From the NCBI RefSeq assembly GCF_006345805.1, contig NC_043011.1:31198464-31262463 (forward strand): DNA of 64,000 nucleotides, in the 5' to 3' direction. The number at the start of each line of letters is the position of its first letter. Position 1 is the first letter of the stretch. A program made the translations under genes and the position numbers. The notes beneath the pieces were generated by a model, which was given only the letters and a program-made list of their open reading frames with translations, had not been told where the DNA came from and did not search any database. This document shows positions 45,801 through 54,800 of this stretch, in pieces. This DNA is from Octopus sinensis (taxonomy: Eukaryota).

Positions 45801-48800
45801 CAGAATGTATTTCCCTGGTTTCCATGCATCATGCATGATACATAATATAAAAAAAATTTTTCAACAACTAGAATAACTTGGGACTTATAAAAGGAAAGTT
45901 TTATATTAACTCAGAACACATGAAGCAAGGCTAACAAAAAGCCTGAAAACAAGCATGGACGTGTAGCATAGCTAGCTGATATCCTCACTGTTTAAGAGAT
46001 ATATTAGAAATGATCTCGTGTTAGATAGCAACCATCTTCGGTTATTTTGACCCTGTTGTCTCCACTGCTCTGATTGGTTGACACTGGCGTAGTTTGTCTC
46101 TTGACTTGTTTCGCGCCAGTGTGTAAACCAACCAATCACGGCCTTCGGATAAGGTCCCATGACAGTCTTTTTGGGTTCTCACTGGAGCCCACCCCAGGTT
46201 ATAAAAGGCGCCAGCAAACCACTATTTCTCGTCTTGGGTTCTAGTCCTTCTCAGGACTAACCTCTGACCACAGAGCGACTCAGCTAGTTCCAGCGACCCA
46301 GCCATGTTCCTGTTCCAGCAACTCAACGACGCCTTTCTACACCGACGCCTTAGCTCAACTTCACGTCGTCTCCATCTCCGTCGCCTTCATCTTCACCAAC
46401 AGTAATACGTACACAGCACTCGCTCAGGTTTAGCTTTCTCGCTGTTGTGATTTTCACCAAGGTTAACAGCACAGTACTACCTATAAGAATTCCTGTATCA
46501 AGAGACCTGGCACAGCATTGAAGCCCCAACCACTGCACATGTGTTCAACCGGCATTCTGCCTTGTGACCCCAACATCCTATTATAGAACTATTGTGTAAC
46601 CTTACTACGAACTGGTAAATTAACTCCATCTTGTCTAAAATATCCTGAGAGACTCATTCTATGCTCTGTATTGTATTCTGTCTCACATACGCATATACCT
46701 TGTTTGTACTTCTGTCGCACACACGAACACACAGACACAAACACTTGTTGCACGCACCGTTGTTGTACTTACAACAGACATACAGGCACACATGTGCACG
46801 CACCCAGACACTCCACTTTGCTAGCACCCATACTTTATCTTATTGTATACATCTGTAAATAAAGTCTTCTCTCTCAAACAGTAGAACGGTTATCGTCCTC
46901 ATTATTCCTTTTGGCACTTATTCATTTATACCATGTATTTTGGCTATCTTTTGTGGGACGACCGTGCGGCGTTTAAAAGGAGACATTTCTGTCACCAACT
47001 CCTTACGTACGGTCGTTTTCCCTCCAGACGTTAGGACAAACTTATGAAAATGCTTTGGACACGAAAGAGTTAAAAATCCAACAAACTAATTTTGATATGA
47101 TTGCTTTCGGTAGATGTTGGCATTTTAATAACAAATTTAAACAAAACACAGTGCGTCAAGTACATTTCAGAAGGAAGGATTAAGAAATATCTTATTCGTG
47201 TGTGTATATATATATACACATACATACTGAAACTTAAATATCTTTAGTTCCTTTGTTAAAAATATATTCCTTAATCATTGAAATATAAATTTTATTCTCT
47301 GTGTTTGTTTTGGTTTCGTGTTAATAGTCAGTCGACTTGGAAAACATTTTTCTTTACATGCGCTGTTCTTTCGAGCAAATAAAGGTATCTCGATACACTT
47401 CGTATATAATATAAAAAGAAAATTCGCTTAAAAAAGATTATTTTGAACTGTTATAATGTATTTGTGCTATCAACGGATCTTTACCTTTTGACCTACAAAT
47501 TTAAAAAATAATTTTTTGTAACTAAACACTTTAAAACTTCGGACACTGGTAGAATTTATCATATAAAACATGTTTTACTCTTAGCATTTTCGAGAAAAAC
47601 TTATATTAACGAAGTTATTTCACGTTAAAGTTCCCGTATTTCAGTAATTTCAACCAATCAATGACGTGTATTCAGCTGAATAAAATTACTGCTGTTGTTT
47701 GTCAACAACAACTATCGGCGGTGTATATTTCGTTTGTCACTGTTATTTATGACAATCCTAACCCTAAAACCTTAACACTAACCCTAAACCCTAACACCCT
47801 AGCCTTAAAACCTGTACAAACGCACGAACGATGTCATAAGCGTGTAGCGTAGCTAGGTGATATTCTCACCGTTTGAGACATATATTAGAAATGATCTCGT
47901 GTTAGATAACAACCATCTTCGGCTATTTTGACCCTGTAGTGTTCACTGCTCTGATTGGTTGACATTGGCGCAGTTTGTCTCTCGACTTATTTCACGCCAG
48001 TGTGTAAGCCAACCAATCACGGCCTTCGTGAAACCCCCAAAAGACTGTGTCATGGGACCTTATCCGAAGGTCGTGATTGGTTGGCTTACACACTGGCGCA
48101 AAATAAGTCAAGAGACAAACTGCACCAATGTCAACCAATCAGAGCAGTGGACACAACAGGGTCAAAATAGCCGAAGATGGTTGTTATCTGACACGGGATC
48201 ATTTCTATTATATCTCTCAAACAGTGAGGATATCAGCTACGCTACAGATCGCACACCACAAGGTTCAACGAAGCCTACTGAAACAAGCAAGCACGTTCAA
48301 TTTCCGCGGAGCACTGTTTGAAAATCATTGGCTTGAAGATGCAAAATTGCATAAAAAAAAAGAAAGATCATAATGCAATTCTTACTTTTAATATAGGATC
48401 TCCCAAAGGTACAAGATGACCTTGTAACGTTCCATTTGTCATTCCAGCAAAGGTTCCATAGAGTGAGACAATTCCTTAAACAAAACAGATATAGCCCGAT
48501 GTATTTATATGTATTACAAACGTGCATTGTTAATGTTTACAACAATTTTCCCCCTCTGGATATATCTTATTTATTTACATCTTTTACTTGTTTCGGTCAC
48601 TGAACTGCGGCTATGCTGGAGCACCGCCTTGAAGGGTTTTAGTCGAACGAATCGACTGCAGCACTTTATTTTTGGTTTTAAAGCCGGGTACTTATTCTAT
48701 CAGTTCCTTATGCCATATCGCTAAGTTACGAGAACGTAAACAAACCAACACCGGTTGTCTAGCGGTGGTGGGGTACACACACAAACACACTCGCATATGA

Positions 48801-54800: not shown

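Follow-up and report, generated by a model that had tools for sequence, protein, structure and literature searches.

The 64,000-nucleotide stretch of the Octopus sinensis genome analysed here (the window; contig NC_043011.1 of assembly GCF_006345805.1, positions 31,198,464 to 31,262,463) carries on its minus strand an eight-exon gene for a protein of 853 amino acids (aa), in which three tandem six-helix AceTr modules are joined to a C-terminal Sua5/YciO/YrdC domain. We consider it highly probable that this gene is the octopus orthologue of the animal fusion of three Ato/AceTr modules with YrdC, represented by zebrafish si:ch211-153b23.3. The family was first described by Ghasemi et al. (bioRxiv 10.1101/2025.05.26.656167; iScience 2026;29:116467, PMC13316224), who reported three tandem six-helix Gpr1/Fun34/YaaH domains followed by a C-terminal Sua5/YciO/YrdC domain in ~900 aa, matched an AlphaFold model to SatP (template-modelling score, TM-score, 0.82), and put forward a “dimerization hypothesis” that rebuilds a six-domain ring. 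The first-pass annotation of this DNA had likewise arrived at three concatenated SatP protomers, two chains of which could form a hexamer; it was right on the architecture, but the idea had already been published by Ghasemi et al. The octopus gene and its mollusc relatives are a new member of this recently described family. The octopus protein aligns end to end with its vertebrate counterparts at 35-40 % identity over the full length, shares their module order and length class (853 versus ~870-900 aa) as well as four of its seven introns, and falls in a tree that follows the species groups. What our results add to the published account is a mollusc-wide fusion whose pattern fits vertical descent, a graded but real constraint on the modules, and a polar residue at the putative constriction of every module.

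With ~36 % G+C, many microsatellites, and few long open reading frames (ORFs), the window is eukaryotic in character, and every exon border, as read from the sequence, is GT-AG and in frame. All seven peptides quoted in the first-pass annotation are real and lie on the minus strand, in different reading frames because the gene is spliced, within five GT-AG exons from 54800 to 48386. These limits coincide precisely with start codon and exon-5 donor, that is, with the membrane part of the protein, and three further exons encoding YrdC reach 33742. The order in the protein is first repeat (R1, aa 1-223), second repeat (R2, aa 224-420), third repeat (R3, aa 421-609), and YrdC (aa 610-853). Exon 1 (54644-54800; aa 1-52 plus one nucleotide) contains the start codon, a short cytosolic N-terminus, the R1 motif YAEPGALGL (54755-54729), and the first transmembrane helix (TM1) of R1, with Asn27 at the position of SatP F17; its donor is GTAAGT, and it matches the Argonauta hians orthologue (P0002) at 94 %. 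Exon 2 (50643-51747; aa 53-420) comprises TM2 to TM6 of R1 with the tail QRYILPGFG (51340-51314), the basic R1-R2 linker KAPKSKQNEKKKNTK (51280-51236), the whole of R2 from its motif YAEPMGMGF (51235-51209) through six helices (according to the structural model of the octopod protein P0001, see below) to its tail EKTVLYVGA (50728-50702), and the first part of the helix that links R2 to R3. The end of this linker and TM1 to TM3 of R3, including the motif remnant EVVETLCFLGN (50496-50464), are found in exon 3 (50268-50545; aa 421-513), while exon 4 (49874-50071; aa 514-579), which is 100 % identical to O. bimaculoides, encodes TM4, TM5 with Glu553, and the start of TM6. Exon 5 (48386-48474; aa 580-609) supplies the end of TM6 and the tail QGHLVPLGD (48424-48398) and ends in phase 0 at the donor AAA/GTAAGA, from which it is spliced to the first YrdC exon. 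The YrdC/TsaC core with PTDTVY, K672-x-R674 (codons at 44248-44240), and S765-x-N767 (43969-43961) occupies exon 6 (43909-44434; aa 610-784), continues in exon 7 (39993-40079; aa 785-813), and ends in exon 8 (33742-33863; aa 814-853 and stop) with a short C-terminal helix. Octopod proteins, 76-97 % identical, agree with the gene model, and tblastn of these proteins onto the window recovers every exon. The nearest protein is the octopod metaclust sequence P0001 (97 %); O. bimaculoides LOC106868648 (P0003) shows 80 % identity over the whole query, a value lowered by the omission of part of exon 3 from the RefSeq model, and the Argonauta hians orthologue 76 %.

Several observations argue that membrane part and enzyme form a single product. 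The homology search recovered more than 90 full-length orthologues, 800-960 aa in length, and among the 120 best matches listed every orthologue has PF01300 and many have PF01184 as well. Furthermore, products of 844-891 aa, those of other molluscs among them, are encoded on Logan contigs that, at 2.8-3.2 kb, are too short to hold introns and, judged from these lengths, therefore represent single mRNAs. Mapping of the exon structures of the amphioxus (L002) and smelt (L003) genes revealed four of the seven octopus introns at the same position and in the same phase in both animals, namely at codons 53, 514, and 814 (all phase 1) and after aa 609, at the channel/enzyme junction (phase 0). Because octopus, amphioxus, and smelt have these four introns in common, an artefactual union of separate genes is very unlikely. 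Such an artefact would imply two genes, one for the channel with its stop just past exon 5 and another, YRDC, downstream of it, and indeed, if the exon-5 donor were left unused, the frame would read VRIAL and then meet a stop at ~48371. However, the YrdC exon starts right at its acceptor, with no Met in its ORF ahead of the domain, the junction is in phase 0 with its intron kept in amphioxus and a teleost, and the whole fusion is encoded on the intron-free, transcript-sized contigs of other molluscs, so that we find this explanation barely credible.

For comparison of the repeats, an alignment of 93 orthologues was cut into R1 (aa 1-225), R2 (226-420), R3 (421-609), and YrdC, and the resulting profiles were aligned with hhalign. 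R1 matched R2 with 97.1 % probability (E 7e-11, 170 columns), R2 matched R3 with 97.9 % (E 3.5e-13, 172 columns), and R1 matched R3 with 92.5 % (E 5e-7, 167 columns); all control comparisons, with reversed profiles or with YrdC, stayed at ≤1 %. By this profile measure, the three-fold repeat lies well outside what chance would produce. From the N-terminal motif to the C-terminal LPxG tail, the alignments run collinearly, with R2 and R3 matching R1 over their full length, and EVVETLCFLGN of R3 proved to be the positional homologue of AEPGALGLIAN in R1. The three tails, which had been described as SatP-like from the start, align mutually, and those of R2 and R3 also align to GRTVLPIGE of SatP. 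Searched against all PDB sequences, the family profile matched the SatP structures 5ZUG (E 2.7e-10; residues 5-188 of the 190 in the chain, with R2 as the best stretch) and 5YS3 (E 2.9e-9). Per-repeat searches with hmmsearch against E. coli SatP (taken from NC_000913, with Z set to the size of PDB) gave an E of 0.0045 for R1 (SatP residues 7-172), 1.1e-7 for R2 (35 bits, residues 9-186), and 7e-5 for R3 (residues 46-186). Together with the negative reversed controls, these matches amount to significant full-length homology to a solved AceTr member.

AlphaFold2 (AF2) was applied to two orthologues, Haliotis P0004 and octopod P0001, the latter being 97 % identical to the window protein but with another first exon. 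The Haliotis model (predicted local distance difference test, pLDDT, 85.5; predicted TM-score, pTM, 0.79) has membrane helices in the order 6+6+6 and an alpha/beta domain at its C-terminus; its R1-R2 linker is disordered, and the one between R2 and R3 contains a cytosolic helix. The P0001 model (pLDDT 84.7, pTM 0.80) shows 5+6+6, with only five helices in R1 because TM1 lies in the missing exon 1; its R3 is confidently folded into six helices (block pLDDT mostly 81-98). With the window’s own exon 1 added, 18 helices are predicted, the number that had been expected from the first reading of the DNA. In Foldseek searches against PDB, the top matches overall fell to the C-terminal domain (Sua5, TsaC2, and YrdC), and SatP (5YS3, 5YS8, 5ZUG) was the sole membrane family at probability 1.00, with a TM-score of 0.75-0.80 (normalised on SatP) and a root-mean-square deviation of 2.7-3.6 Å over ~180 columns, a match that is not assigned to a particular repeat. 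Profile matches, models, and fold comparison thus converge on three SatP-like six-helix units in tandem and a cytosolic YrdC domain. Likeness to SatP/YaaH (5ZUG, 5YS3, 5YS8) extends to the six-helix hourglass fold, a collinear alignment, and the equivalents of Q50, W76, and Y166; unlike SatP, a homo-hexamer of single-module chains, the octopus protein unites three diverged modules and an enzyme in one chain. By the profile scores of its orthologues, it also belongs to the same Pfam family as fungal Ato1/Ady2 and Gpr1 (AceTr, TC 2.A.96, PF01184), which are single-module proteins of 200-300 aa with the canonical motif and the FLY constriction (PMC8379382).

The C-terminal domain matches PF01300 at aa 638-820 with 114.5 bits (cut-off 25.1). 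Its PTDTVY motif and the residues K672, R674, S765, and N767 align with Sua5 of P. abyssi (KGRP, SAN) and are invariant in 63 orthologues; they correspond to the KxR/SxN tetrad defined for Sua5/TsaC enzymes, which condense threonine, bicarbonate/CO2, and ATP (PMC6004061). Foldseek placed the domain with Sua5/TsaC2 (E 4e-10 to 5e-10) and with E. coli YrdC (1HRU, TM-score 0.78-0.82). The Pfam scan of the 853-aa protein returned no SUA5 domain, and the enzyme is therefore of the TsaC type. Going by these motifs, the enzyme part is a threonylcarbamoyl-AMP-synthase domain of the single-domain TsaC/YrdC type, in which all four residues of the KxR/SxN catalytic tetrad are present; it may make threonylcarbamoyl-AMP for N6-threonylcarbamoyladenosine or adenylate a different carboxylate or a carbamate. 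It resembles TsaC/YrdC and Sua5 (1HRU, 2MX1, 6F87, 3AJE, 9DSQ) and human YRDC in PF01300, tetrad, PTDTVY, and fold, but differs from these enzymes in being tethered to an 18-helix membrane part and, with regard to Sua5, in the missing SUA5 domain.

A further claim of the first-pass annotation, that the signature motif erodes progressively along the chain, holds only in part. The divergence gradient R1 < R2 < R3 is real and R3 has lost the motif, but in R1 and R2 it is near-invariant rather than eroded. N8-P-A-P-L-G-L14 of SatP aligns to E18-P-G-A-L-G-L24 in R1 and to E226-P-M-G-M-G-F232 in R2, the Asn being replaced by Glu in both repeats of all orthologues. From molluscs to birds, Y16, E18, P19, L22, and G23 of R1 are kept in 91-93 of the 93 orthologues, and Y224, E226, and P227 of R2 are invariant in the alignment. 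By this conservation, the R1/R2 pattern Y-x-E-P-x-x-L/M-G is a derived variant that has become fixed and is strongly constrained, not a product of decay, and the alignment places true loss of the motif in R3 alone, where the homologous stretch V439-F445 keeps just Leu443, followed downstream by Asn448. The very basic linker between R1 and R2 is present but consists of two parts, a variable stretch and then a near-invariant EKKKNTKYAEP, whose N-T-K-x-A-x-P matches the SatP N-terminus G-N-T-K-L-A-N-P when the sequences are read directly; this second part thus belongs to R2 as its N-terminal arm.

Constraint follows the order R1 > R2 > R3. Columns conserved at ≥90 % make up 28 % of R1, 15 % of R2, and 5 % of R3, compared with 41 % of YrdC; identity between octopus and vertebrates is 42-47 %, 28-30 %, and 16-18 % in the repeats and 50-51 % in YrdC, and that between the window protein and Argonauta is 96.9 %, 86.7 %, and 78.8 %, with 88.9 % in YrdC. 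Nevertheless, R3 is still under purifying selection and not decaying: over aa 449-513, about one third of the repeat, the proportions of nonsynonymous (pN) and synonymous (pS) differences between this octopus and Argonauta are 0.17 and 0.99, respectively (pN/pS 0.17). The functional residues of SatP, including the FLY constriction (F17, Y72, L131), were taken from PMC8379382 and mapped onto the repeats across the 93 orthologues. The essential gating residue Q50 corresponds to Q64 in R1 (93/93), to Q267 in R2 (80/93), and in R3 to S478 in octopus, although Gln stands there in 70/93. W76 is Trp in 93/93, 93/93, and 91/93 in R1, R2, and R3, and Y166 is Tyr in 93/93 in R1, Phe381 in octopus R2 (Tyr in 92/93), and Tyr in 92/93 in R3. 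This comparison, which had been suggested along with the original reading, shows the equivalents of Q50, W76, and Y166 kept in all three repeats family-wide; therefore, all three modules look like remodelled pores rather than dead copies. At the constriction, F17 is replaced by N27 in R1 (91/93), by N235 in R2 (Asp in 61 and Asn in 26 sequences, Asp in most vertebrates), and by N448 in R3. Y72 corresponds to F86, Y289 (His in most), and Y500, and L131 to I144, L347, and F552 (Met in most). With Asn or Asp for F17 in every module, none has the hydrophobic FLY constriction. An invariant Glu is found in TM5 (E151 in R1, E553 in R3), and the Gly-Gly pair of TM2 is kept in R1 only.

With regard to transcript forms, the RefSeq models of O. 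bimaculoides (P0003) and Argonauta hians (P0002) use an internal exon-3 donor (exon end 50463, GT at 50462-50461), which drops aa 449-513, that is, half of TM1 plus TM2 and TM3 of R3. We considered and rejected the truncated octopod R3 that these models imply, since the missing 65 aa form an intact, selected ORF that is uninterrupted both in Octopus and in the Argonauta genome (L004 3341-3622); the AF2 model of P0001 also folds this stretch as confident helices. The short form is either a minor isoform or a mis-prediction. O. bimaculoides models also begin with another first exon (MEVLNAAG..., MEVLNAAGPSADESPCG...) that replaces TM1 and the motif of R1. A search of the window from 1 to 64000 yielded no convincing match to it; if real, it would give rise to an isoform with a five-helix first module. 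In addition, a 172-bp unit is present in two 100 % identical tandem copies at 54303-54647, overlapping the 3' end of exon 1 together with its donor. An identical second 5' splice site thereby lies ~172 nt downstream in intron 1 and, if used, would break the reading frame. The duplication is either a very recent event or an assembly artefact.

How might such a protein work? Given 18 helices and the in/in topology of SatP, both termini, the linkers, and the enzyme would face the cytosol. By analogy to the solved SatP structures, which are hexamers (PMC8379382), a ring of six modules is probably assembled from two chains; it would contain three types of non-equivalent pore, with the two enzyme domains lying underneath. 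A small anion would be the most likely substrate of these pores, and their polar constriction suggests a selectivity or gating unlike that of the acetate-conducting SatP. Fusion to the enzyme probably couples anion flux to ATP-dependent adenylation on the cytosolic face, a link that is motivated, though not proven, by the use of threonine, bicarbonate/CO2, and ATP in threonylcarbamoyl-AMP synthesis. Several points count against this picture and the family assignment beneath it. PF01184 found no match in the octopus exons or in the full 853-aa protein, even at E ≤ 1, so that the octopus protein stands below the Pfam threshold; orthologues score 17-38 bits (cut-off 25), several of them (26-38) passing in R1 or R2, and the assignment of the octopus protein therefore rests on profiles and predicted fold. 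The AceTr signature NPAPLGL(M/S) is not present in any repeat (EPGALGL, EPMGMGF, VVETLCF), the site-S1 residue E57 of SatP is lost in all three, and with Asn/Asp at the F17 position, conduction of acetate cannot be assumed from the alignment. Finally, ring, substrate, and coupling are inferences, hexamer formation and carboxylate conduction being established for SatP only. A more far-reaching version, in which an ancient eukaryotic channel-enzyme machine, common to bilaterians and one or more alga-like protist lineages, passes bicarbonate, carbamate, or another small anion through its Asn/Asp pores, YrdC adenylates the emerging substrate, and the three pores split the labour of conducting, gating, and docking the enzyme, appears improbable to us.

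Other arrangements have to be weighed against the six-module ring with three working pores. R3, and perhaps R2, might be a non-conducting scaffold that completes the ring and positions the enzyme, leaving R1 as the sole working pore. The fall in conserved columns from 28 % through 15 % to 5 %, the parallel fall in identity to Argonauta (97 %, 87 %, 79 %), the loss of the N-terminal motif from R3, Ser478 at the Q50 position of octopus R3, and the restriction of the TM2 Gly-Gly pair to R1 would all fit such a scaffold. Still, R3 is under purifying selection at aa 449-513 (pN/pS 0.17), folds confidently as six helices, and across the family retains Gln in 70/93, Trp in 91/93, and Tyr in 92/93 at the positions of Q50, W76, and Y166, usually with Asn at the F17 site; we thus regard the scaffold as a tentative possibility and on the whole an unlikely one. 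Rather unlikely, too, is a single-chain pseudo-trimer with three pores, or an oligomer other than a dimer, without any SatP-like six-unit ring. Its appeal lies in the well-packed monomer predicted by AF2 (pTM 0.79-0.80), but the hexameric state of the solved SatP structures, the fact that three modules are exactly half a ring, and the independent arrival at the dimer hypothesis from vertebrate models by Ghasemi et al. favour two chains. The 18-helix region could finally be conceived as a mere membrane anchor, devoid of transport, for an enzyme of the N6-threonylcarbamoyladenosine (t6A) pathway, as YrdC has the most invariant columns (41 %) and an invariant tetrad. Yet an anchor would not require 18 helices, R1 is conserved as much as the enzyme or more (97 % versus 89 % within octopods), and the invariant intramembrane polar residues N27, Q64, E151, and W90 sit at pore positions of SatP, which makes this notion highly improbable. 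Taken together, our results point experiments to a non-acetate substrate and to R1 as the first module to mutate.

Ghasemi et al. described the family as essentially vertebrate, “except mammals”, with the YrdC fusion absent from the protostome clade, and suggested that the few protostome sequences within the vertebrate clade may reflect horizontal transfer. In contrast, we found the fusion in cephalopods, gastropods, and bivalves, and further orthologues in amphioxus, lampreys, sharks, ray-finned fishes, lungfish, coelacanth, frogs, turtles, lizards, birds, and platypus. In a neighbour-joining tree, which is a rough guide only, the molluscs are placed outside the vertebrates, in a clade of their own. 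This clade, the occurrence in three mollusc classes, and the introns common to chordates fit vertical descent from a bilaterian ancestor; from these sequences, the fusion would thus be old and inherited vertically rather than a vertebrate novelty or the outcome of horizontal transfer. In platypus, a full-length orthologue that combines both domains is present (P0075; Ornithorhynchus anatinus LOC103171094, 872 aa), and no therian sequence was among the 120 best matches; the loss therefore appears to be therian, not mammalian. Overall, the family, although conserved from molluscs to birds and platypus, is apparently lacking in therian mammals. In its members, an enzyme that belongs to a universal tRNA-modification pathway is attached to a channel fold otherwise known solely in microbes. 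An exhaustive search of 1.84 billion proteins returned just 44 cluster representatives.

Among these homologues are marine metagenome proteins of 1071-1124 aa, which have the order R1-R2-R3-YrdC plus an extra C-terminal region of ~180-230 aa and in which R2 still has the canonical A-N-P-K-P-L. Two of their genes are intronless, P0181 (L005 1927-5301, 1124 aa) and P0183 (L006 4670-7954, 1094 aa). The neighbours of the latter are a gene for an RNA-recognition-motif (RRM) protein and one for CobN/Mg-chelatase H that is split by introns. This neighbourhood points to a photosynthetic, alga-like eukaryote as host and suggests that the fusion is not confined to animals but also present in such an environmental eukaryote. 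In the catfish Tachysurus vachellii (cluster of P0122), near-identical copies carry the closely spaced locus tags Q7C36_013710, _013716, _013722, and _013727, suggestive of a local tandem expansion. In the literature, we found zebrafish si:ch211-153b23.3 only in expression lists. In one zebrafish transcriptome study, it is a co-expression hub with irg1l (itaconate pathway), noxo1a, and its neighbour si:ch211-153b23.5 (PMC11140123), which hints, though weakly, at a connection with carboxylate metabolism in an epithelial or immune context.

The remaining features of the window concern repeats. Intron 6 contains long (ATCT)n and (TTA)n microsatellites at 41041-41166 and 41559-41661, and introns 5 and 6 harbour several copies of an interspersed repeat on both strands, which translate as ...AVIGWLTHWREISRETNCANVNQSEQ... 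(~45975-46178, 47946-48059, 47959-48321). A 132-aa ORF (…RPDIMIWDREEKLCTVVEISCPADVNI…) at 14449-14847 on the plus strand is unrelated to the fusion gene and may be a fragment of a retrotransposon-encoded protein.

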